Assembly (NCBI GenBank): GCA_965240325.2
Contig: CBDEKP020000003.1
Location: 1 to 22,701 of the forward strand
Direction: 5' to 3'
Length of the DNA stretch: 22,701 nucleotides
Origin: Rebecca billardiae RCC1528
Lineage: Eukaryota > Protista > Haptophyta
Position 1 is the stretch's first letter. Each line of letters opens with the position of its first letter. Positions 1 through 22,701 of the stretch are shown piece after piece. Under the pieces are notes generated by a model. The model saw nothing but the letters and a program-made list of their open reading frames with translations. It was not told where the DNA came from and ran no database searches. The translations under genes and the position numbers were made by a program.

Positions 1-979
1 CCGCGCGTGCTACTTGTGTGTTACATGGCGGTACTGTATAGCTGCCTAGACATGTCAGAAGGCCAGTCCCTGAGTAAGCTGCCGCGCACGGGCGCTGGTG
101 CCTGTGTCCTGAGTGTTTGTGTGGCCAGGCTTGAGGCTGCTGCCAAGCTCTGCGCAGAGTGCGTTGTCTGCGGTCTACCGCACTTCGCAGTCAGCAGCGG
201 TGTGTGGCAGATGCATCTCCTGCCGTTGCCAGTCTCGGCCCGCCAAGGCGCGCATCGCAGCCGCAAGCGACGGTGTTTATCTTCACTGGCGTTGTGCCAC
301 GGAACTACCTCCAGGAGGTGCTGCGCCGTGAGCGCGCGCGCCATGGTGGCGGCGGCTGATCAGCATGGCCGCCTGGCACTCCCCAGCCCATCGCGCGTGC
401 CGCTCAGGAGGCGGGTCAGGGCGCAAGATGACAGCGGGGGCGGTGGCGGCAGGCGGAGCGTGGTGATTCCTCGTGCGCGCAACGCTGGCGCGCCTTCGCC
501 ATTCTCGCCAGCTTGGCCGGCACGGGTGCCGGCCGGGTGCTCGGCGGTGCGCTCGTGGGGCTCCGCGGCCGCGCGCGAGCGAGTGACGGGTGTCGAGGTC
601 GGCCCGGGCGGTGCGAGAGGGTTCATCAGTCCACTCTACGGCCCCCCACGCGGTACGAGCCAATAGGCCGCAACGGTTGGCGCCCGAGGGCCCGCCAAGG
701 GGTCGCGTGCACTCCGGCGGGTGGAACGCACTGCTGTTTCCCCAAGCGGGCTCGCGTCGAGCCCGCTCGGCCGTTTCGGGGCGATGGCCGACGCGACGGG
801 AGTGGTGGGTTTGGCAGTCCGCGGCGGTTATCGCGTTATGACTGCCGCGTCGCTGCTCCGCCGCCGCCCGTGCCCCTCCCCGCTAGGTGGGGGTACCCGG
901 CCGGACGCGGGCTCGGCGCTCGCAGCGGCATCGCCGGAGTGACCGGACGGCGACGAGATGTGAGTCGGAACAGGGCAGT

Positions 980-1010
980 CACTACAAAAAGTCTCCGCTG
1001 GCGGAGCATC
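980..1010 (+). repeat. Left terminal inverted repeat (31 bp perfect, CACTA-start)
   Basis: CACTACAAAAAGTCTCCGCTGGCGGAGCATC is the reverse complement of 9920-9950. Confidence 0.9.
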
Positions 1011-3135
1011 GTGGGAGACCCAGACCCTCCGCAGGCGGAGATTTTTGTGGCCACGAAAAATCCCCGCTGGCGGAGCATGGGCGTTCCACGAATGCTCCGC
1101 TGGTAGAGCCTCGGCTAGGCCAATGTCATTATTGATGACTGACTTGACTTGAGCTGAGCTCCGCTGGCGGAGCTTTGGTGGCGGAGCATGTCATATTGGA
1201 GTGATGCGTAGCCGTCAACCGTCATCAGAATCCATATGACAGTATCCACACTCAACCTCCGCTGGCGGAGCTCGCAGACCTATTTGACTTGAACTGAGCT
1301 CCGCTGGCGGAGCCTCGACTGAGCCGAATGTCATTATTAATGACCCACTTGACTAGTGAACAGAGCTCCACTGGCGGAGCCTCGGCTGCGCCGAATGTTA
1401 TTGTTGACGACCCACTTGACTTGAACTGAGCTCCGCTGGCGGAGCTTTGGTGGCGCCGTATGTCATATTGGAGTAATGCGAAGCCGTTAACCGTAATCAT
1501 CATCCATATTGGCACTACGTAACTTCCGCTGGCGGAGCTCGCAGACCTATTGAACTTGAACTAAGCTCCGCTGGCGGAGCCTCGGCTGCGCCGAATTTCA
1601 TTATTATTAATGACCCACTTAACTAGTGGACTGAGCTCCACTGGCGGAGCCTCGGCTGCGCCGAATGTTATTGTTGACGACCCACTTGACTTGAACTGAG
1701 CTCCGCTGGCGGAGCTAATTGGTGGCGCCGTATGTCATATATTGGAGTAATGCGAAGCCGTTAACCGTAATCATCATCCATATTCACACCTAACCTCCGC
1801 TGGCGGAGCCCATTGGCCTATTCGACTTGAACAGAGCTCCGCTGGCGGAGCCTCGGCTGCGCCGAATGTGATTATTAATGACCCACTTGACTAGTGAACA
1901 GAGCTCCACTGGCGGAGCCTCGGCTGCGCCGAATGTTATTGTTGACGACCCACTTGACTTGAACTGAGCTCCGCTGGCGCGGAGCTTTGGTGGCGCCGTA
2001 TGTCATATTGGAGTAATGCGAAGCCGTTAACCGTAATCATCATCCATATTCACACGTAACCTCCGCTGGCGGAGCCCACTGGCCTATTCGACTCGAACTG
2101 AGCTCCGCTGGCGGAGCCTCGGCTGCGCCGAATGTCATTATTAATAATGACCCACTTGACTAGTGAACAGAGCTCCACTGGCGGAGCCTCGGCTGCGCCG
2201 AATGTTATTGTTGACGACCCACTTGACTTGAACTGAGCTCCGCTGGCGGAGCTTTGGTGGCGCCGTATGTCATATTGGAGTAATGCGAAGCCGTTAACCG
2301 TAATCATCATCCATATTCACACGTAACCTCCGCTGGCGGAGCCCACTGGCCTATTCGACTCGAACTGAGCTCCGCTGGCGGAGCCTCGGCTGCGCCGAAT
2401 GTCATTATTAATAATGACCCACTTGACTAGTGAACAGAGCTCCACTGGCGGAGCCTCGGCTGCGCCGAATGTTATTGTTGACGACCCACCTGACTTGAAC
2501 TGAGCTCCGCTGGCGGAGCTTTGGTGGCACCGTATGATTGTCATATCGGAGTGATGCGTAGCCTTCAACCGTCATCAGAATCCATATGACAGTATCCACG
2601 CTCAACCTCCGCTGGCGGAGCTCGCAGACCTATTTGACTTGAACTGAGCTCCGCTGGCGGAGCCTCGACTGCGCCGAATGTCATATTATTAATGACCCAC
2701 TTGACTAGTGAACTGAGCTCCACTGGCGGAGCCTCGGCTGCGCCGAATGTTATTGTTGACGACCCACTTGACTTGAACTGAGCTCCGCTGGCGCGGAGCT
2801 TTGGTGGCGCCGTATGTCATATTGGAGTAATGCGAATCGTAAATAACCGTAATCATATCCATATTGACACTCAACCTCCGCTGGCCGAGCTCGCTGATCT
2901 ATTCGACTCGAACTGAGCTCCGCTGGCGGAGCCTCGGCTGCGCCGAATGTCATTATTAATGACCCACTTGACTTGAATTGAGCTCCGCTGGCGGAGCTTT
3001 GGTGGCGCCGTATGTCATATTGGAGTAATGCGAATCGTAAATAACCGTAATCATATCCATATTGACACTCAACCTCCGCTGGCCGAGCTCGCTGATCTAT
3101 TCGACTCGAACCGAGCTCCGCTGGCGGAGCCTCGG
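993..3135 (+). repeat. Left subterminal array: hairpin motif (GAG)CTCCGCTGGCGGAG(C) in a ~265-bp higher-order repeat
   Basis: About 30-35 motif copies counted by eye, separated by four recurring linker types. CACACGTAACCTCCGC recurs at 2051 and 2318, giving a 267-bp period. Confidence 0.92.
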
Positions 3136-4940
3136 CTTGCGGTTTGCTGCAATTGGGGCTGGGCTCAGCATGGGGCAGCTGTTCTGCACAGCCCAGGCGG
3201 GGCGTCACCGCCTGTGGGCCGCCGGTGGGCAGGGCCGACGGCGTCGCAGAGCTCATGCGTGGGAGCAGCGCGTTGAGGAAGCGATCAAGGTCGAGAAGGA
3301 AGGGGCAAGCAGCAGGGGCTGCCGGTACGGTACGTTTGTACATGCCTCCACACCGGTGCACATCACCCTTGCTCACTGCAGTGAACAGTGCTGTCACTCA
3401 TCTCATCCTCGCTCACCATGCAGTGACGGCCGAGCTGCGGCAAACACTCACCGGCACCGAACACGCATCGGCGGTGCCCGCTGGCGCTGGCATCATGCTG
3501 TCCTCTACTTGCTGTCGGACAGCATTAGGAGACGGCACCGCCGCATTTCTGCGAGCGGGCGAGGTGCTGTCCTCTACTCAGCGAGGCTGAGAGGCTGAGC
3601 ACGGATCACGGATGGTGAGCCCTGGTATCTCAACGCATCCAGGAGAGCAGTTGGTGCATGACTGTGCTCAGACGTGCAGGACCAACCATCCGGTGCTGCT
3701 TCAAGCACCCGCGCCAACAGCGGCGGCACTCAACTCCACGCTGCTGATGCGGCCGCACGGCTGCAGGGATGGCACCACGGCGGGCGACGGCGGGCGCAGC
3801 AGCTCGCAGCTCAAAGTTGCGCGCCAGTGGGGCCTGGGCGCCGGGCGCACCGAGCGCGGTGACGCTGCTCACCTCGCCCAGCACGCTGGAGCCGCTGTCA
3901 TCCGACGCTGCTGTGCCCGCGTCCAGCTTGGGCTGCAGCAGCTGCGCTCGACTCCTCGCCGAGTGCGGCGGCAGCAGCGGGGATGGTACCACGGCGGGCG
4001 GCGGCTATCACTTCAGCTGGCAGCTCGGCGGCTCTCGCCTGAGGGGCCTGGACGGTGGATGCACCGAGCGCGGTGACGCTGCTCGCCTCGCCCAGCGCGC
4101 TGGAGCCGCTGTCATCCGACGCTTCTGTGCCCGCGTCCAGCTTGGGCTGCAGCAGCTGCGCTCGACTCCTCGCCGAGTGCGGCGGCAGCAGCAGGGATGG
4201 TACCACGGCGGGCGGCGGCTATCACTTCAGCTGGCAGCTCGGCGGCTCTCGCCTGAGGGGCCTGGACGGTGGATGCACCGAGCGCGGTGACGCTGCTCGC
4301 CTCGCCCAGCGCGCTGGAGCCGCTGCCATCCGGCGCTGCGGTGTCCGCGCCCAGCCGGAGCAGAAAGAGGTGCGCTCGACTCCGCACCCGTGCGGCGGCA
4401 GCAGCAGGGATGGTATCAAGGCGGGCGGCGGCAGTCGCTGCAGCTGGCAGCTCGGTGGTGCCTGCCCGAGGGACCTGGGTGACGGACGCGCCGAGCGAGC
4501 TGACGCCCCTCGCCTCCCCTATCACGCTCGAGCCGCTGCCATTTGATGCTGCTGCAGCGTTCGGGCAGCTGCAGACTCTGCGCTCGACTCCACGCCGCGT
4601 GCGGCCGCAGGCAGCAGCAGCAGCGGGCCCGAGGGGCCTGGGCCACGGACGCGCCGAGCGCGGTGACGCCTCTCGCCTCGCTCAGCGCGCTGGAGCCGCT
4701 GCCACCGGGCGCTGCTGCGCCCGCGTCCAGCTTGGGCTGCAGCAGGCCGCTCAATCAACTCCTCGCCGAGTACGGCGGCAGCAGCAGGGACGTTGCCACG
4801 GCGGGCGGCGGCTATCACTTCAGCTGGCAGCTCGGTGGTGCCTGCCCGAGGGGCTTGGGTGGTGGATGCACCGAGCGCGGCGACGTCGCTCGCCTCGCCC
4901 AGCGCGCTGGAGCCGCTGCCATCCGGCGCTGCGTTGTCCG
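3136..4940 (+). repeat. Inner left arm of the long inverted repeat (pairs with ~6395-8195)
   Basis: Near-identical reverse complement of the right arm with scattered substitutions; the ORF track shows mirrored translations. Confidence 0.92.
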
Positions 4941-5250
4941 CGGCTCCGCGCCCCGCCGGGGCAGCTAGCTGTCACAGCTGGCAGCTGCGCTCGACTCCGC
5001 GCCAGTGGGAGGGATGATGCTTCGGCGGGCGGTGGCGGTCGATGCAGCTGGCATCTCGGTGGTGCGCGCCCGAGGGGCGTGACCGGCTTAGGCAGCAGCA
5101 GCTGCGCTCGACTCCGCGCCGAGTGCGGCTGCAGTAGCAGGGAAGGCGCCACGGCGGGCCGCGGTGGTGGATGCAGCGATCAGCTCGGTTGTGTGCGCGC
5201 GAGGGGCCTGGGCGGCAGACGCGCCCAATGCGGTGACGCTGATGCACGCG
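3745..5250 (+). repeat. GC-rich tandem repeat, ~214-bp unit, about 7 variably degenerate copies
   Basis: GGATGGTACCACGGCGGGCGGCGG at 3981 and 4195 gives a period of 214. This is not a multiple of 3, and the same peptides recur in shifting frames, so it is non-coding. Confidence 0.88.
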
Positions 5251-6109
5251 TCCGATATGCTGGCCAGCAGCAGCCGTTGTGACACTTCTTCCGCCGGCTG
5301 ACGGCAGCAGGCGGTACCTCGGTCACATCGGTGAATTCGAATCGGGGAGAACCCGGCAGGCTTCAGTCCCGGACACTGCTGCCTGCCAATGACCTGTGAG
5401 GGCCGCAGGCCTTCCGGGGCGCGGGAGCCGCTGCGGTCAGCTCTTTGAGCTAGCCCGGCGCCGGGCGCGCGAACAAGTATGGCCCGGCGTAGGTGAGGCC
5501 GAGCAAGGCGCGCCGCCGAAGTGCCGCGGCCCAGATCTCAGCGCACGCACCATCAGTACTACGACATCACTGTGCAGCGGATATGGCTATGCATCAGATA
5601 GCACTGCTGATATGACTGATGATGATGATCCGCCGCGCGGAGCCCGACTACCAGTAGCAGGCGCAAATGATCCGAGCTGAGTACGTAAGTAGCCCGTGTC
5701 CAGTGGCGGTGTCACACTTATGACTCCGGAATCGGAGGAGTCGTTATCGTCATCGTCATCAACTCATCATCATGACGAAGATGCAATATAGCGGTCAGGC
5801 GGACCTGCGCCTCCATATGCCGTCAATATAGTGCTGAGGGCGGGGCCGGCAGCGTAGTAGCTTACTACTACTATCGATAAAGGAATAGCGCCCTCATAAT
5901 AACAGTAGCTGCGTGTGACCCGTCACCGCGTTCTCAAAACTCCTGCGCTGATGATGATTGGGACTCGGACGTACGCCGTACGTCTTAAGCCTATACCGGC
6001 GTGCGGTCGCCAGTTAATTCATGCGGCCCCTGCGACTCAGCGGCTCACCCACCTGGTTCATACGCAGCAACCGAGCAGTCACGGAGATCTGACAGCAGCT
6101 GTTAATCAC

Positions 6110-7585
6110 CAGCCTGCTGCTGCTGCTGCCTGCGGCCGCACGCGGCGTGGAGTCGAGCGCAGAGTCTGCAGCTGCCCGAACGCTGCAGCAGCATCAAACG
6201 GCAGCGGCTCGAGCGTGATAGGGGAGGCGAGGGGCGTCAGCTCGCTCGGCGCGTCCGTCGCCAAGGTCCCTCGGGCAGGCACCACCGAGCTACCAGCTGC
6301 AGCGACTGCCGCCGCCCGCCGTGATACCATCCCTGCTGCTGCCGCCGCACGGGTGCGGAGTCGAGCGCGCCTCCTGATGCTCCGGCTGGGTGCGGACACC
6401 GCAGCGCCGGATGGCAGCGGCTCCAGCGCGCTGGGCGCGGCGAGCGACGCCACCACGCTCGGTGCATCCACCGTCCAGGCCCCGGCAGGCACCACCGAGC
6501 TGCCAGCTGAAGTGATAGCCGCCGCCCGCCGTGGCAACGTCCCTGCTGCTGCCGCCGTACTCGGCGAGGAGTTGATTGAGCGGCCTGCTGCAGCCCAAGC
6601 TGGACGCGGGCGCAGCAGCGCCCGGTGGCAGCGGCTCCAGCGCGCTGAGCGAGGCGAGAGGCGTCACCGCGCTCGGCGCGTCCGTGGCCCAGGCCCCTCG
6701 GGCCCGCTGCTGCTGCTGCCTGCGGCCGCACGCGGCGTGGAGTCGAGCGCAGAGTCTGCAGCTGCCCGAACGCTGCAGCAGCATCAAATGGCAGCGGCTC
6801 GAGCGTGATAGGGGAGGCGAGGGGCGTCAGCTCGCTCGGCGCGTCCGTCGCCCAGGTCCCTCGGGCAGGCACCACCGAGCTGCCAGCTGCAGCGACTGCC
6901 GCCGCCCGCCTTGATACCATCCCTGCTGCTGCCGCCGCACGGGTGCGGAGTCGAGCGCACCTCTTTCTGCTCCGGCTGGGCGCGGACACCGCAGCACCGG
7001 ATGGCAGCGGCTCCAGCGCGCTGGGCGAGGCGAGCAGCGTCACCGCGCTCGGTGCGTCCACCGTCCAGGCCCCTCAGGCGAGAGCCGCCGAGCTGCCAGC
7101 CAAAGTGATAGCCGCCGCCCGCCGTGGTACCATCCCTGCTGCTGCCGCCGCACTCGGCGAGGAGTCGAGCGCAACTGCTGCAGCCCAAGCTGGACGCGGG
7201 CACAGCAGCGCCCGGTAGCAGCGGCTCCAGCGCGCTGGGCGAGGCGAGCAGCGTCACCGCGCTCGGTGCGTCCACCGTCCAGGCCCCTCAGGCGAGAGCC
7301 GCCGAGCTGCCAGCTGCGGCGACTGCCGCCGCCCGCCGTGGCACCATCCCCGCTGCTGCCGCCGCACTTGGCGCGGAGTCGAGCGCAGCTGCTGCAGCCC
7401 AAGCTGGACGCGGGCACAGCAGCGTCGGATGACAGCGGCTCCAGCGCGCTGGGCGAGGTGAGCAGCGTCACCGCGCTCGGTGCGCCCGGCGCCCAGGCCC
7501 CACTGGCGCGCAACTTTGAGCTGCGAGCTGCTGCGCCCGCCGTCGCCCGCCGTGGTACCATCCCTGCAGCCGTGCGGCCGCATCA
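6110..7585 (-). repeat. GC-rich ~214-bp tandem repeat, inverted copy
   Basis: Reverse complement of the 3745-5250 units. The innermost units (6110-6395) are arranged differently from the left arm. Confidence 0.88.
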
Positions 7586-8195
7586 ACAGCGTGGAGTTGA
7601 GTGCCGCCGCTGTTGGCGCGGGTGCTTGAAGCAGCACCGGATGGTTGGTCCTGCACGTCTGAGCACAGTCATGCACCAACTGCTCTCCTGGATGCGTTGA
7701 GATACCAGGGCTCACCATCCGTGATCCGTGCTCAGCCTCTCAGCCTCGCTGAGTAGAGGACAGCACCTCGCCCGCTCGCAGAAATGCGGCGGTGCCGTCT
7801 CCTAATGCTGTCCGACAGCAAGTAGAGGACAGCATGATGCCAGCGCCAGCGGGCACCGCCGATGCGTGTTCGGTGCCGGTGAGTGTTTGCCGCAGCTCGG
7901 CCGTCACTGCATGGTGAGCGAGGATGAGATGAGTGACAGCACTGTTCACTGCAGTGAGCAAGGGTGATGTGCACCGGTGTGGAGGCATGTACAAACGTAC
8001 CGTACCGGCAGCCCCTGCTGCTTGCCCCTTCCTTCTCGACCTTGATCGCTTCCTCAACGCGCTGCTCCCACGCACGAGCTCTGCGACGCCGTCGGCCCTG
8101 CCCACCGGCGGCCCACAGGCGGTGACGCCCCGCCTGGGCTGTGCAGAACAGCTGCCCCATGCTGAGCCCAGCCCCAATTGCAGCAAACCGCAAGC
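6395..8195 (-). repeat. Inner right arm of the long inverted repeat
   Basis: Mirror of 3136-4940 (coordinate sum ~11330). Confidence 0.92.
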
Positions 8196-9937
8196 CGAGG
8201 CTCCGCCAGCGGAGCTCGGTTCGAGTCGAATAGATCAGCGAGCTCGGCCAGCGGAGGTTGAGTGTCAATATGGATATGATTACGGTTATTTACGATTCGC
8301 ATTACTCCAATATGACATACGGCGCCACCAAAGCTCCGCCAGCGGAGCTCAATTCAAGTCAAGTGGGTCATTAATAATGACATTCGGCGCAGCCGAGGCT
8401 CCGCCAGCGGAGCTCAGTTCGAGTCGAATAGATCAGCGAGCTCGGCCAGCGGAGGTTGAGTGTCAATATGGATATGATTACGGTTATTTACGATTCGCAT
8501 TACTCCAATATGACATACGCCGCCACCAAAGCTCTGCCAGCGGAGGTCAATTCAAGTCAAGTGGGTCATTAATAATGACATTCGGCGCAGTCGAGGCTCC
8601 GCCAGTGGAGCTCAGTTCAAGTCCAATAGGTCGATCTGCGAGCTCCGCCAGCGGAGGTTACGTGTCAATATGGATGATATGATTACGGTCAACGGCTTCG
8701 CATTACTCCAATATGACGTACGGCGCCACCAAAGCTCCGCCAGCGGAGCTCAGTTCAAGTCAAGTGGGTCATCAATAATGACATTCGGCGCAGCCGAGGC
8801 TCCGCCAGCGGAGCTTAGTTCAAGTTCAATAGGTCTGCGAGCTCCGCCAGCGGAGGTTACGTGCCAATATGGATGATGATGATGATTACGGTTAACGGCT
8901 TCGCATTACTCCAATATGACACTGATACGGCGCCACCAAAGCTCCGCCAGCGGAGCTCAGTTCAAGTCAAGTGGGTCGTCAACAATAACATTCGGCGCAG
9001 CCGAGGCTCCGCCAATGGAGCTCAGTTCACTAGTCTAGTGGGTCATTAATAATGACATTCGGCGCAGCCGAGGCTCCGCCAGCGGAGCTCAGTTCAAGTC
9101 GAATAGGCCAGTGGGCTTCGCCAGCGGAGGTTACGTGTCAATATGGATGATGATTACGACGATTAACGGCTTCGCATTACTCCAATATGACATACGGCGC
9201 CACCAAAGCTCCGCCAGCGGAGCTCAGTTCAAGTCAAGTGGGTCGTCAACAATACCATTCGGCGCAGCCGAGGCTCCGCCAGTGGAGCTCAGTCCACTAG
9301 TCAAGTGGGTCATTAATAATGAAATTCGGCGCAGCCGAGGCTCCGCCAGCGGAGCTTAGTTCAAGTTCAATAGGTCTGCGAGCTCCGCCAGCGGAGGTTA
9401 CGTGCCAATATGGATGATGATGATGATTACGGTTAACGGCTTCGCATTACTCCAATATGACACTGATACGGCGCCACCAAAGCTCCGCCAGCGGAGCTCA
9501 GTTCAAGTCAAGTGGGTCGTCAACAATAACATTCGGCGCAGCCGAGGCTCCGCCAATGGAGCTCAGTTCACTAGTCTAGTGGGTCATTAATAATGACATT
9601 CGGCGCAGCCGAGGCTCCGCCAGCGGAGCTCAGTTCAAGTCAAATAGGTCTGCGAGCTCCGCCAGCGGAGGTTGAGTGTGGATACTGTCATATGGATTCT
9701 GATGACGGTTGACGGCTACGCATCACTCCAATATGACATGCTCCGCCACCAAAGCTCCGCCAGCGGAGCTCAGCTCAAGTCAAGTCAGTCATCAATAATG
9801 ACATTGGCCTAGCCGAGGCTCCACCAGCGGAGCATTCGTGGAGCGCCCATGCTCCGCCAGCGGGGATTTTTCGTGGCCACAAAAATCTCCGCCTGCGGAG
9901 GGTCTGGGCCCCTTGCCCGGATGCTCCGCCAGCGGAG
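8196..9937 (-). repeat. Right subterminal array of the CTCCGCCAGCGGAG hairpin motif (inverted relative to the left array)
   Basis: Roughly 25-30 motif copies with the same linker types, but fewer and differently ordered units than the left array. Confidence 0.92.
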
Positions 9938-9950
9938 ACTTTTTGTAGTG
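9920..9950 (-). repeat. Right terminal inverted repeat (TAGTG end)
   Basis: GATGCTCCGCCAGCGGAGACTTTTTGTAGTG. Confidence 0.9.
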
Positions 9951-10280
9951 ACTCTTCTGGTCGGAAGCAGCTCGCCTTTGCGGCGCGGGTACCAAGCGGA
10001 AAGTGAGCGTACCTGCAGGCGGGCCGACCCTCTCGGCGTGACAGGCGCACCTTCGGGGCCGGTCAGGGCAGCCCACGTCGTGCAGTCGACCGCTTCCGCC
10101 GCGACTGCCCCCCGGCGCACCCTGCCCCGGCCGACGCCTGAGCACAGCGGCCCCGCCCGGGCCCGGGGCCCCCGGGCGGCAGGCCGCGGCGGCGCCGGCA
10201 CACTCACGGACAGCCAGCGGCGCTCCTCCGCCTCCTTCGTTCTTCGTTCCTCGGTGTCCCCTCGGTGTGGCGAGCAGCGC

Positions 10281-11025
10281 GCGCATTCATCCCGCCCGGC
10301 CTCATGAAATTGCACCCGTGCTGCTTCTGGGTCGCCTGCGGCTTCCGGCGCTGGGCGCACAGTGGAGCGGAGTGTGAGGGGGCGGTGCGCTGCCGTCCAT
10401 CGTGCGCGCTCTTCGCTCGTCACCACCCTCTGCCTCGCTCGAGCGAGGCGCGCGCTCCGCGCATTCTGCCTCGCTCGTGCGCCAGCGCGCTATTATCCTG
10501 GGGATGACGCGTGCATCCGTGCTGCTTCGGCGTCCTCCTGCACCGTCCGGCGGCCGAGCGCACAGCGGGGCGACGCGGGAGGTGCCGGTGCAGGGGCGTC
10601 CGTCGCGGTCACTCAGCGCTCATCGCCATCTGCTTCGCTCGAGCGAGAGCGCCCTCAGCGCATTCATCACGCCCGGCCTCATGCAATTGCACCAGTGCTG
10701 CTTCGGGGTCCCCTGCGGCTTCCGGCGCTGGGCGCACAGCGGAGCGGAGCGCGAGGGAGCGGTGCGCTGCCGCCCGTCGTGCGCGCTCCTAGCTCACCAC
10801 CCTCTGCTTCGCTCGAACGAGCCGCGCGCTCCGCGCCTTCTGCTTCGCTCGAGCTCGAGCGCGCTTGTATCCTGGGGATGACGACGAGTGCATCAGTGCT
10901 ACTCCTCCTGCAGCGTCCGGCGGCTGAGCGCGCAGCGGGGCGCCGCGGGAGGTGCCGGTGCGCGGGCGTCCGTCGCGGTCACTCAGCGCTCATCGCCGTC
11001 TGCTTCGCTCGCGCGAGAGCGCACT
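10281..11025 (+). repeat. Diverged tandem duplication, ~377-bp unit x2
   Basis: GCGCATTCATC[C/A]CGCCCGGCCTCATG at 10281 and 10658, with colinear similarity along the whole unit. Confidence 0.85.
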
Positions 11026-11274
11026 CATCATCACCTTCCGCCACCTCGCTCGAGCTGTGGATGGAGCGCGCTTCGGCGGGGCGGGCAGTGGCCACATCCA
11101 TGCTGCTACTTCTACGTCCTTCGGCAGCGCGCGAAGGCGGGGCGCATATCGATACGGACCAAGCCGCTCGCACGCGGCATGCTCGTGTCACGCACGCCGC
11201 CGCCGCTCGCCGCCGCTCGCCTGAACCCGCACTCGCGCGGCTGCGTGTCAGCCTGCGCCCAACTTCTCCGAGCG

Positions 11275-11406
11275 TCACATGCGCGTAACTTTGCTCCTTA
11301 CATGCGCGTGTCTTTGCGCCTCACTGCGCCTAACCTCTCCGCGCATCACATGCGCCTAACTTTGCGCCTTACATGTGCGTAACTTCGCGTGTCACTTGCG
11401 CCTAAC
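11275..11406 (+). repeat. Imperfect minisatellite, ~11-12 bp unit (AC[A/T]TGCGC[C/G]TA-like)
   Basis: ACATGCGCGTAACTTTGCTCCTTACATGCGCGTG...ACATGCGCCTAACTTTGCGCCTTACATGTGCGTAAC. Confidence 0.75.
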
Positions 11407-18586: not shown

Positions 18587-19660
18587 TCAGACGGCTGAGG
18601 GCCCAAGCCCGAGCTCGAAGCTGCGGGGGATGATCGTCTTTGTGAGCATCTCGTACGCCATCCACTGGCGGATGCTCGGGATCTGCGCCTGCGAGAAGTC
18701 GAGCTTGCGGCCGAAGACCAGGCAGCGCACGTACATGCACACGAACACGCCGCAGTCGAAGCCGTTGCCCTGCACGGGCGCGTCGTCGCGCAGCACGCTC
18801 GGCCAGTGTGACACGTCGACATGCGCGCCGTACTTGGTGTGCCATTCCTCGGCGAGCCACGGGCGGAGCAGCCGCGCGCACGAGGGGTGCCGCGGACGGT
18901 ACGAGTCAAGGAGCTCGAAGCGCTTCGCCTTCAGGTCGATGGCGGCGAGCACCCAGTGCGCCTGCCCCAGGTTGATCGGCACGAGAATGCGCTGGTACCT
19001 GCGCAGGTCGACGTCCTTCGTCCAGCGGCGCACGCCGTCGTAGTCGTACGCAGCTGTGTCAGTCGCCCTGGCGAGGCGGGTGTAGAAGAAGCAGCTCATC
19101 ACGTGCGCGCGGTGCGCCATCCTCGGCCGCTGCTTGGCATACTTGTCTAGCATGCCCAGGTAGACGTTGATGAGCTCATCGTTCAGCCACTCGCCCCGCC
19201 GCATGCGCGCCATGCACTGCCGGGTGACGTTGTTCCCGCGGAGCGAGACGAGCACCTCAAGGGGGCGCTTGCGGCAGCTCGAGCGATCGAGCGCGTCGCG
19301 TACCGCGCGCGCCTCGTCGCCCCCGACCGACCACGGCGAGTGCCGGGCCCTGGTCCGCCTGAACGCACGCCTGCGCAGGAAGCCCCATGCCGATGACCGT
19401 AGTCGCAGGCGGCCGATTTGGCGCAGGGCGCTGAGCGCGTCGACGGCGGAGACGAATGACCTGCGCCGGTGGCGCCGCGCCGGGCGATGCTCGGCGAACC
19501 CGCCACCCGCGGGACGCCACCGAGAGCTGCGGGCCCTACTCGGCCACTGCCACGACGGCGCCATCTGCTCACGCGGCTTTTTAAGCCCGGCTTTCTCGAG
19601 CAGTGACAGTAGCCAGCCGGACGCCGGTCGCTCAGCACCCGACGCCGTCAGATTCGTCAT
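18587..19660 (-). CDS. ULP1: Ulp1/SENP family SUMO-specific cysteine protease (peptidase C48), with a basic N-terminal extension
   Basis: Signature motifs WLNDELINVY, MSCFFY, VRRWTK, ILVPIN..AHW (catalytic His), LLDS, PVQGNGFDCGVF (oxyanion Gln and catalytic Cys), DFSQAQIP.IR. The domain is uninterrupted. The symbol is a family-level call only. Confidence 0.95.
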   Translation of the reverse strand: MTNLTASGAERPASGWLLSLLEKAGLKKPREQMAPSWQWPSRARSSRWRPAGGGFAEHRPARRHRRRSFVSAVDALSALRQIGRLRLRSSAWGFLRRRAFRRTRARHSPWSVGGDEARAVRDALDRSSCRKRPLEVLVSLRGNNVTRQCMARMRRGEWLNDELINVYLGMLDKYAKQRPRMAHRAHVMSCFFYTRLARATDTAAYDYDGVRRWTKDVDLRRYQRILVPINLGQAHWVLAAIDLKAKRFELLDSYRPRHPSCARLLRPWLAEEWHTKYGAHVDVSHWPSVLRDDAPVQGNGFDCGVFVCMYVRCLVFGRKLDFSQAQIPSIRQWMAYEMLTKTIIPRSFELGLGPSAV

Positions 19661-20017
19661 CCACGTGAGTCCGGCAAGCGGTATACCACGACTAGGCTGT
19701 CTGCCAACTACACAGGGTCCGCAGTGTCACGATCAGCCCAGTGCCGCCGCAATCAGAGTGGGCTACACACGTTGTACACACGCACACACACACGCGTCCT
19801 CATTCATTCGGCTGGTCGGACCCTAGCCCCCGCCCGGCAGCAGCCGGCATGCTGCTGGCGCGTCGGACCATCAGCTCGTGCCAGCGCCCGAGCGGCAGCC
19901 GGCCCGCGCTGGGAGCCGTTCGCACGGCAACCGCGCTGCATGCTCGTGAGCAGCGCTCTGCAGCCGGGCGCTCGAGCCTCCCGCTCGAGCGAGAGCTGCC
20001 GGTGCGACCCGAGGCGC

Positions 20018-21328
20018 TTACGCCCACCCAGCGCGACCCTTGGCGTGCTTGGCGTGCTTCCCCCCCTTCTTGTCCTTCGGCTCCTTCTTGATCTTCTGCT
20101 GCGGCGGGCGGCCGCCGCCTTCGCGCGCCCGCCAGCGCGCGCCATCTTCTTTGATCTCGCGCAGCTCCGACTCGAGCTCCTCCAAGTCGGAGTCGGCGTC
20201 TGTGCGCTCTCCGCGGCCTCGTTTGTTCGTCGTCGACACCGGCTGCAGCAGCGCGGCCCGCGACGCGGCCAGCCCAGCCATCACGTCCTCCTCCTCCGAA
20301 TCCTCCTCCTCCTCCTTCTCGCGCGCCGCCGCCGCCGCCGCCGCCGCCTCGCGCGCCGCCTCACGCGCCGCCTCGCGCGCACGCTTGGCCTTGATCTTGC
20401 GGCGGCGCTCGCGCTCGCGCTCGTCCGACTTGCACGCCGCCTCGCGCGGCTCCGCCTGCTGCCGGCCCGCCGCCGCGCGCGCGCGGGCTCGCGCCGCCGC
20501 CGCCTCCTCCTTCTCCTGCTCAGCCGCCACGTCGCGGGCGCGCCTGGCCGCGGCCGCCTCGCGCGCCCGCTCGCGCGCAGCAGCCGCCTCCGTCTCCTGC
20601 TCAGCCTGCTCAGCCGCCTCGCGCACGCGCGTGGCCGCCGCCGCCGCGCGCGCTCGCTCGGCCGCCATCGCGCGCTCGGCCGCCGCCGCCTTCGCCTGCT
20701 CGCGGGCTCGGGAACCCGCCAGGGCGTTGCTGTGCTCGCCGCGGCGCGTGCCCAAGCTCGTCAGCTCCTCGTCTCCGCCCGGCACGGCAGCCGCAGTCGG
20801 CGGCGCCCGCACCGCCCCGGTGAGCGGCGGCGCCCGCACCGCCGCGGTGAGCGGCGGCGATTCCGGCGGCGGCGCCCGGCAGCGCGGCGGCGGCGTCCGC
20901 GGCGGCGACGGCGATGCCGACGGCGACATGGACGGCCGCGTCGGCGACACCCGCTGCGACGGCGGCGTCTGCGCGGCCAGCGGCGCCCGCTCGCGCAGCG
21001 GCGTCGGCGTCAGCGGCCCGTCCGCCGAAGGGCTCGGGCGGCTAGCGGGGCCGTCCTCCTCCTCCCCCTCGTCCTCGTCCTCCTCGTCCTCGTCGTCGCC
21101 CACCGAGCGGTCGCCCTCCGAGCGGTCGCCCTCCGAGCCTAGGTCGGGGATGCCATCGTCCTCGTCCTCGTCCTCGCTGTCGTGGGCGTGGTCGTCGGGC
21201 GACCCGATCGGCTGCGTCAGCTGGTGCATGAGTTCGCTGATGCCGGCCTCGTCGAAGTCGACGGACTCCTCTCGGCCTGCGCGCGCGACCGGCATGGCGC
21301 GCACGCGCCTCGGCTGGTGGCGCCTAGG
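20018..21328 (-). CDS. Hypothetical low-complexity protein (acidic tract, Pro/Ser region, Ala/Glu/Arg coiled coil, Lys-rich tail), probably 5'-truncated by the telomere
   Basis: ~430-codon frame with protein-like segmented composition (DSEDEDEDD, EAAREAAREAA, KIKKEPKDKKGGKHAKHAK). The frame stays open from TAA 20018 up to 21328, at the telomere junction. The first ATG is at 21295. Confidence 0.65.
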   Translation of the reverse strand, partial: PRRHQPRRVRAMPVARAGREESVDFDEAGISELMHQLTQPIGSPDDHAHDSEDEDEDDGIPDLGSEGDRSEGDRSVGDDEDEEDEDEGEEEDGPASRPSPSADGPLTPTPLRERAPLAAQTPPSQRVSPTRPSMSPSASPSPPRTPPPRCRAPPPESPPLTAAVRAPPLTGAVRAPPTAAAVPGGDEELTSLGTRRGEHSNALAGSRAREQAKAAAAERAMAAERARAAAAATRVREAAEQAEQETEAAAARERAREAAAARRARDVAAEQEKEEAAAARARARAAAGRQQAEPREAACKSDERERERRRKIKAKRAREAAREAAREAAAAAAAAREKEEEEDSEEEDVMAGLAASRAALLQPVSTTNKRGRGERTDADSDLEELESELREIKEDGARWRAREGGGRPPQQKIKKEPKDKKGGKHAKHAKGRAGWA

Positions 21329-21622
21329 TTAGGGTTAGGGTTAGGGTTAGGGTTAGGGTTAGGGTTAGGGTTAGGGTTAGGGTTAGGGTTAGGGTTAGGG
21401 TTAGGGTTAGGGTTAGGGTTAGGGTTAGGGTTAGGGTTAGGGTTAGGGTTAGGGTTAGGGTTAGGGTTAGGGTTAGGGTTAGGGTTAGGGTTAGGGTTAG
21501 GGTTAGGGTTAGGTTAGGGTTAGGGTTAGGGTTAGGGTTAGGGTTAGGGTTAGGGTTAGGGTTAGGGTTAGGGTTAGGGTTAGGGTTAGGGTTAGGGTTA
21601 GGGTTAGGGGTTAGGGTTAGGG

Positions 21623-21663
<41 letters not shown>

Positions 21664-21688
21664 GGTTAGGTTAGGGTTAGGGTTAGGG

Positions 21689-21729
<41 letters not shown>

Positions 21730-22395
21730 GGTTAGGGTTAGGGTTAGGGTTAGGGTTAGGGTTAGGGTTAGGGTTAGGGTTAGGGTTAGGGTTAGGGTTA
21801 GGGTTAGGGTTAGGGTTAGGGTTAGGGTTAGGGTTAGGGTTAGGGTTAGGGTTAGGGTTAGGGTTAGGGTTAGGGTTAGGGTTAGGGTTAGGGTTAGGGT
21901 TAGGGTTAGGGTTAGGGTTAGGGTTAGGGTTAGGGTTAGGGTTAGGGTTAGGGTTAGGGTTAGGGTTAGGGTTAGGGTTAGGGTTAGGGTTAGGGTTAGG
22001 GTTAGGGTTAGGGTTAGGGTTAGGGTTAGGGTTTAGGGTTTTAGGGTTAGGGTTAGGGTTAGGGTTAGGGTTAGGGTTAGGGTTAGGGTTAGGGTTAGGG
22101 TTAGGGTTAGGGTTAGGGTTAGGGTTAGGGTTAGGGGTTAGGGTTAGGGGGGTTAGGGGTTAGGGTTAGGGTTAGGGTTAGGGTTAGGGTTAGGGTTAGG
22201 GGTTAGGGTTAGGGTTAGGGTTAGGGTTAGGGTTAGGGTTAGGGTTAGGGTTAGGGTTAGGGTTAGGGTTAGGGTTAGGGTTAGGGTTAGGGTTAGGGTT
22301 AGGGTTAGGGTTAGGGTTAGGGTTAGGGTTAGGGTTAGGGTTAGGGTTAGGGTTAGGGTTAGGGTTAGGGTTAGGGGTTAGGGTTAGGGTTAGGG

Positions 22396-22436
<41 letters not shown>

Positions 22437-22650
22437 GTTAGGGGTTAGGGTTAGGGTTAGGGTTAGGGTTAGGGTTAGGGTTAGGGTTAGGGTTAGGGGT
22501 TAGGGTTAGGGTTAGGGTTAGGGTTAGGGTTAGGGTTAGGGTTAGGGTTAGGGTTAGGGTTAGGGTTAGGGTTAGGGTTAGGGTTAGGGTTAGGGTTAGG
22601 GTTAGGGTTAGGGTTAGGGTTAGGTTAGGGTTTCGGGGTTAGGGTTAGGG

Positions 22651-22687
<37 letters not shown>

Positions 22688-22701
22688 GTTAGGGTTAGGG
22701 T
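21325..22701 (+). repeat. Telomere (TTAGGG)n, G-strand on +, ~1.37 kb
   Basis: Continuous TTAGGG from 21329 (preceded by TAGG) to the window end, with occasional TTAGG/TTTAGGG/TTAGGGG variants. Confidence 0.99.

Follow-up and report, generated by a model that had tools for sequence, protein, structure and literature searches.

A recently active foldback transposon family with 7-bp target-site duplications in the haptophyte alga Rebecca billardiae

Contig C6 of the Rebecca billardiae RCC1528 genome assembly (GCA_965240325.2; CBDEKP020000003.1) carries about 9 kb of DNA whose two halves mirror each other, which raises the question of what kind of mobile element, if any, this structure represents. 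An original prediction made from the letters of the sequence had read positions 980 to 9950 as a foldback element with CACTA ends, possibly an undescribed CACTA-derived family mobilized in trans. Here, the whole of C6 (22,701 bp) was taken as the window, and the genome searched was the 72-Mb assembly of 41 contigs. We conclude that positions 971 to 9959 (8,989 bp) are very probably a non-autonomous cut-and-paste foldback DNA transposon that was recently mobile, with a P-type enzyme as the leading guess for its transposase.

The limits of the element are set by the DNA into which it was inserted. It interrupts a dispersed host repeat, the left part of which (771-970) was found at at least 35 other loci at 96 to 100% identity, each match stopping exactly at 970, while the right part (9960-10430) matched those loci too, each match beginning exactly at 9960 and sharing 7 bp with the match of the left flank. 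In at least 23 uninterrupted copies of the host repeat, the left- and right-flank alignments overlapped by exactly 7 bp (e.g., C30:68087-68281 and 68275-68743; further empty sites lie on C1, C7, C10, C11, C13, C15, C16, C20, C22, C23, C25, C26, C31, C32, C35 and C36). The shared heptamer, GTCGGAA, was read directly and is identical on either side of the element (964-970 and 9960-9966), and it is single in these paralogous empty sites. Because the flanks of the empty sites meet with a 7-bp overlap, 8,989 bp were inserted with exact ends and with duplication of GTCGGAA; boundaries at 971 and 9959 and the 7-bp target-site duplication are proven by these sites.

Alignment of the ends of 16 paired copies from across the genome gave the same limits. 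In all 16, the element starts with CAGGGCAGT followed by CACTAC and finishes with GTAGTG followed by ACTCTTCTG, such that each copy has one CAGGGCAGT-CACTAC end and one CAGAAGAGT-CACTAC end, conserved yet non-identical. In the window, the left terminal repeat (971-1010, plus strand) is made up of nine asymmetric outer bases (CAGGGCAGT) and then a 31-bp perfect repeat from CACTAC; the right terminal repeat (9920-9959, minus strand) has CAGAAGAGT as its outer nine bases on the minus strand, followed by the same 31-bp repeat. The predicted 31-bp perfect terminal inverted repeat is therefore present (motif CACTACAAAAAGTCTCCGCTGGCGGAGCATC, 980-1010 versus 9920-9950), but the proposed CACTA...TAGTG ends of the element are refuted, as homology among the copies extends 9 bp past CACTA at both ends in 16 of 16 cases and the empty sites agree. 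For this reason the element is placed at 971-9959: CACTA occupies its nucleotides 10-14, the element itself begins with CAG and ends with CTG, and the terminal consensus of the family is CAG(GGC/AAG)AGTCACTAC.

These boundaries bear directly on a CACTA/EnSpm-derived foldback family ending in CACTA...TAGTG. The motif does lie near the end of the element, where CACTAC opens the perfect 31-bp inverted repeat, and CACTA elements typically have subterminal arrays of repeats such as those described below. CACTA/EnSpm elements have CACTA at their termini and target-site duplications of 2-3 bp; here, CACTA is not terminal, homology continues 9 bp beyond it in 16 copies, empty-site junctions fall at 971 and 9959, and the duplication is 7 bp rather than 3 bp. 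A genome scan with PF02992 (Transposase_21), run with no positive control, gave no match, and a search for the Transposase_21/TnpD partner expected between the same terminal repeats yielded no such element, the longest one with these ends being at most 9.4 kb. The 7-bp duplication and the CAG...CTG ends exclude CACTA/EnSpm, and we regard derivation from that superfamily as highly improbable.

Inward of the termini, inverted self-alignment recovered an outer block of homology (977-2200 versus 8721-9953, 93% identity) and an inner block (2709-5076 versus 6268-8619, 96% identity, with a 2,054-nt core at 99%), in keeping with the predicted mirror homology of about 4 kb. The left arm measures about 4.1 kb and the right arm about 3.7 kb, with two tandem arrays in each. 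Module order in both is terminal repeat, palindrome-rich tandem array, 0.59-kb unique module (U) and 214-bp satellite, and all three predicted arm modules (a hairpin array, a unique stretch of ~600 bp and a 214-bp tandem repeat) were thus located. The left outer array (1094-3134, plus strand) has a period of about 267 bp with 67-bp sub-units and contains 20 palindromes of the form CTCCGC-TG-GCGGAG; the right outer array (8193-9833, minus strand) has periods of 198 and 274 bp and contains 17 palindromes with a CA spacer throughout (Tandem Repeats Finder, motif count and module probe for both arrays). The left U module (3140-3730, plus strand, 591 bp), present in all copies, is about 100% identical to its inverted partner (7600-8190, minus strand; module probe). 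The left satellite array (3729-5076, start approximate, plus strand) consists of about four clear units and then diverged units, and its counterpart lies at 6268-7567 on the minus strand (Tandem Repeats Finder, inverted self-alignment and module probe). The central loop (5077-6267, limits from inverted self-alignment) is 1,191 bp long and not ~0.85 kb as first estimated; a stretch of about 0.85 kb within the loop (5301-6150) is family-specific, with genome matches in the 16 family copies only, and the open reading frames of the loop gave no Pfam match. Long tandem-repeat arms around a 1.19-kb loop, together with mobility shown by copies and empty sites, identify the element structurally as a foldback, and the foldback-type family that had been proposed is borne out by its arms, 16 complete copies and empty sites.

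Mirror-image structures of this kind can be suspected of being palindromic read artifacts, which the original prediction had discounted on the grounds that the arms differ in array copy number and by point changes. The arms are indeed unequal (hairpin array, 2,041 bp on the left versus 1,641 bp on the right; satellite, 1,013 versus 1,204 bp) and differ by point changes, and the same asymmetries recur in a second genomic copy, C5:1580709-1589694, which is separated from the window copy by seven substitutions and one 3-bp indel over 8,989 bp (99.9% identity) and has unrelated flanks. The identical arm asymmetries in this second copy rule out a palindromic read artifact. An assembly artifact or a segmental duplication involving no mobile element could draw on the shortness of the contig (22.7 kb) and on its first 970 bp, which duplicate part of C34 up to the exact insertion point and suggest that the assembler broke at the foldback. 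Against this stand 16 copies on 11 contigs with unrelated flanks, the arm asymmetries repeated in the C5 twin, the precise 7-bp duplications and the many empty sites, and we consider this explanation to have almost no chance of being correct.

The terminal 121 bp returned 36 genome matches, and a 22-bp terminal pattern allowing two mismatches returned 34 sites, corresponding to 16 pairs and two solo ends. Pairing of ends and inspection of their target-site duplications, the check put forward with the original prediction, thus yielded 16 pairs and a 7-bp duplication. In total, the family comprises 16 complete copies (6,987-9,396 bp), distributed over 11 contigs, as well as two truncated ends and two fragments of degenerate sequence; on C10, C12 and C17, the unpaired ends belong to truncated copies that neighbor ordinary genes of the host (GNAT acetyltransferase, pseudouridine synthase, short-chain dehydrogenase and methyltransferases). 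Duplications tallied for 15 of the 16 complete copies were exact over 7 bp in seven copies, had one mismatch in one and measured 6 bp in another, the nine clear cases being GTCGGAA, GCTGAAC, CCCTCGC, TACATCA, AACTAC(T/A), CGGCGC, GCATTCG, AGCCACC and CGCGCGC. Subfamilies are about 88-95% identical to one another, and seven copies of 6,987 bp differ pairwise by 2-10 substitutions. Since some of the 16 complete copies are nearly identical, the family has moved very recently.

Module order is the same in all 16 copies, and nearly all variation in size reflects array length, which ranges per arm from 1.2 to 2.4 kb for the palindrome array and from 0.5 to 1.2 kb for the satellite. With the asymmetric ends as the reference for orientation, 14 of 16 copies have the loop and its flanking unequal satellite arrays in one direction, and the other two, the window copy and the C5 twin, have them reversed, meaning that the inner block was inverted by recombination between the arms and that the flipped isomer has transposed since. 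The U modules within the window copy are about 100% identical to each other versus 91% to those of other subfamilies. Parts of the arms also extend beyond the family, with U at 89% identity in other foldback families and the 214-bp satellite at 80-84% in many other inverted pairs genome-wide. Other inverted pairs that share U and the satellite (80-89%; e.g., L049:5158-7185) carry different outer modules, and local foldback families are therefore modular, with common inner parts. One such case is a second, larger foldback family (L049:4950-10000; G000:C17:644400-649474) that shares U and the 214-bp satellite (86%) and has a different outer part built on another hairpin repeat, AAACTGGG...CCCAGTTT; this combination of inner likeness and outer difference is evidence for exchange of inner modules between families. 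It is also worth recording that one family copy, L033 (G000:C27), has a 2,406-bp element nested at its element positions 717-3122; the terminal inverted repeats of the nested element are perfect over at least 36 bp (AGACCCCTTCAGGG...) and it is apparently flanked by TA, features that suggest a Tc1/mariner-type insertion.

The window contains 37 strict copies of the 14-bp palindrome CTCCGC-YR-GCGGAG, all of them inside the element (0 in the other 13.7 kb) and restricted to the outermost 2.2 kb of either arm; the first falls within the terminal repeat at element positions 23-36. The spacer is TG in 20/20 left-arm palindromes and CA in 17/17 right-arm palindromes, and palindrome orientation is therefore fixed relative to the nearer end. 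Other copies of the family have 37-53 palindromes. By analogy with Galileo of Drosophila, in which THAP-binding sites lie in the tandem repeats of long terminal inverted repeats (PMC3688188), the palindromes are probably an array of candidate secondary transposase-binding sites. The element encodes no recognizable protein: 10 open reading frames inside it gave no Pfam match at E≤1. Mobilization in trans, as originally proposed, is well supported by the family being non-coding and lacking Pfam matches in its reading frames, by 16 complete copies at different sites, by near-identical pairs and by empty sites.

We envisage a transposase, supplied in trans, that would recognize termini of roughly 40 bp and cut its target with a 7-bp stagger. 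The arrays of palindromes (17-20 per arm in fixed orientation) probably serve as its secondary binding sites. Unequal exchange would make the arrays grow and shrink and would generate almost all of the 6,987-9,396 bp size range, while recombination between the inverted arms would both homogenize them and flip the inner block.

For the enzyme itself, a P-superfamily (Galileo/1360-like) transposase is the leading guess, offered tentatively and at somewhat less than an even chance. It is based on the 7-bp duplication, which falls within the 7-8 bp of the P superfamily, on Galileo-like architecture and on the fact that the genome has a P-type transposase gene. A scan with PF21787 (P-type RNase-H) gave one genome match above the curated cut-off, at C21:1533970-1534365, within a 1,322-amino-acid open frame; genome scans with PF12017 and PF21789, which had no positive control, gave no match.

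Several observations weigh against a foldback moved by a P-type enzyme. The terminal 121 bp and the terminal 60 bp (the latter at E≤10) matched only family members in the assembly, revealing no autonomous partner, and the 22-bp pattern with two mismatches found no terminus-sharing element outside the family; the link to a P-type enzyme is accordingly one of analogy. Putative protein binding by the palindromes is likewise argued from Galileo. The hAT pattern, too, would accommodate CAG termini. Six complete copies have short or no target-site duplications (5, 4, 3, 3, 0 and 0 bp), some with eroded terminal bases, and call for secondary deletion or recombination as an explanation. Finally, no GTANTAC-like palindromic target consensus was seen among the nine clear duplications, a small sample.

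It is quite possible that a non-P transposase (hAT-like, Mutator-like or of an undescribed superfamily) is responsible and that the likeness to Galileo is convergent, long repetitive arms occurring in several superfamilies. Elements of the hAT superfamily have ends of the form YARNG, which the CAG-beginning termini match, and non-autonomous derivatives are common among them; no partner of any kind with these termini, hAT or other, was found in the assembly. Target-site duplications are usually 8 bp in hAT and 9-11 bp in Mutator elements, and the 7 bp of this family fits neither. Foldbacks of Drosophila (FB) and of nematodes (Tm1) have been tied to Mutator-type enzymes (PMC3169594), whereas the 7-bp duplication proven here characterizes Galileo/1360 (PMC4168063). 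Dada, another superfamily with 6-7 bp duplications, was rejected, being without terminal inverted repeats and targeting small-RNA genes (PMC3706591). We think it unlikely that the 7-bp foldback families of this alga, this one included, owe their movement to an enzyme from outside the canonical P, hAT and Mutator groups; the candidates for such an enzyme would be an undescribed transposase superfamily or P-like elements that are divergent, consist of two genes and have an HMG-box partner, and in the latter case the HMG-box protein would recognize the palindrome or cruciform-prone arrays. A P-superfamily transposase is kept as the leading guess.

Other searches with the termini gave little. A looser pattern, CAGNNNAGTCACTAC, returned four extra exact hits, about the chance expectation, and three of them (L050-L052) were rejected as relatives since they are without palindromes and look random. 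The fourth hit, at G000:C26:1000231-1000246, lies outside the family and reproduces 16 nucleotides of the left terminus exactly (CAGGGCAGTCACTACA); about 0.1 such 15-mer matches would be expected by chance. One scan of public metagenome contigs with the terminal pattern gave no match.

The closest known design is that of Drosophila Galileo, a member of the P superfamily; the element is Galileo-like rather than CACTA-like because its ends lie nine bases outside CACTA and its duplication is 7 bp. In D. willistoni, the longest Galileo copy, of 9,021 bp, has terminal inverted repeats of 4,246 and 4,680 bp and no transposase, and Galileo makes 7-bp target-site duplications (PMC4168063). Arms of ~4 kb are consequently not new. 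Tandem repeats of ~210 bp in the Galileo terminal repeats vary between arms, and exchange occurs between subfamilies (PMC4168063, PMC3573991). The family described here likewise has a 7-bp duplication, tandem repeats of about 200 bp in long arms whose number varies by arm and by copy, non-coding copies that consist of two arms plus a spacer, repeated candidate binding sites, and exchange between copies and subfamilies. Unlike Galileo, it has no P-type transposase linked to it and no GTANTAC-type target consensus, and its host is a GC-rich alga and not a fly. Its arms combine two different arrays with a unique module, its inner modules are common to other local families with different ends, and the outermost 9 bp are conserved at either end but differ between the two.

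The element also resembles FB and Tetris of Drosophila in having multi-kilobase tandem-repeat arms around a short loop and in that most copies are without a gene. Its ends and repeats are unrelated to theirs in sequence, and FB duplicates 9 bp. The arm repeats of Tetris behave as a satellite (PMC4079207), a parallel to the 214-bp repeat found here at many loci.

The host repeat into which the element was inserted occupies 771-970 and 9960 to about 11030 of the window, where a 377-bp unit occurs twice in tandem at 87% identity (10281-11027), with a 23/71-bp minisatellite beyond it at 11253-11406. Its end of roughly 480 bp recurs directly about 3.8 kb away at several loci (e.g., C30:68087-68743 and 71885-72352), so that the host repeat resembles an element whose ends are long direct repeats. 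Open reading frames adjacent to it gave no Pfam match to indicate its type, and no second ~480-bp repeat was found within the window. At a different insertion site, that of family copy L042 (G000:C5:791052-799970), there is no duplication and the flanks are partly inverted repeats of each other (ctcggaagtcc / ggacttctccgag), suggesting that the target was palindromic or that an inversion followed.

The contig is 65-70% G+C, with no sign of human DNA, and values along the window range from 55 to 79%. Positions 21327-22701 consist of about 229 TTAGGG repeats that reach the end of the contig, G-rich strand outward, marking a telomere and hence a chromosome end about 11 kb from the foldback. Directly before the telomere, 19700-21330 has 72-79% G+C and short degenerate repeats (periods 12-87 bp), and the long open reading frames on both of its strands are probably compositional. 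A 357-amino-acid open reading frame (18587-19660, minus strand), 1.7 kb from the telomere-adjacent low-complexity zone, contains a Ulp1/SUMO-protease domain (Peptidase_C48, E = 1.9 × 10−34); Ulp1-type proteases are often carried by transposons. At the other end of the contig, window positions 500-970 are 100% identical to G000:C34:1054286-1054756 up to the insertion point, with no match in C34 to the element or to its right flank. From these alignments, C6 probably continues C34, the assembler having broken at the foldback.

An open-access literature search combining foldback with five haptophyte genus names found no paper pairing them. The family is a new one of an already known foldback type and is not CACTA-derived; with its classification corrected in this way, a well-documented and very recently active foldback family is added to an algal lineage. 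The assembly apparently broke at this element, beside a telomere, and the inverted arms of the element offer a substrate for inversion, as those of Galileo do in flies. Given that the 214-bp satellite is common to several mobile families, the genome of R. billardiae is suited to studying how transposons seed satellites.

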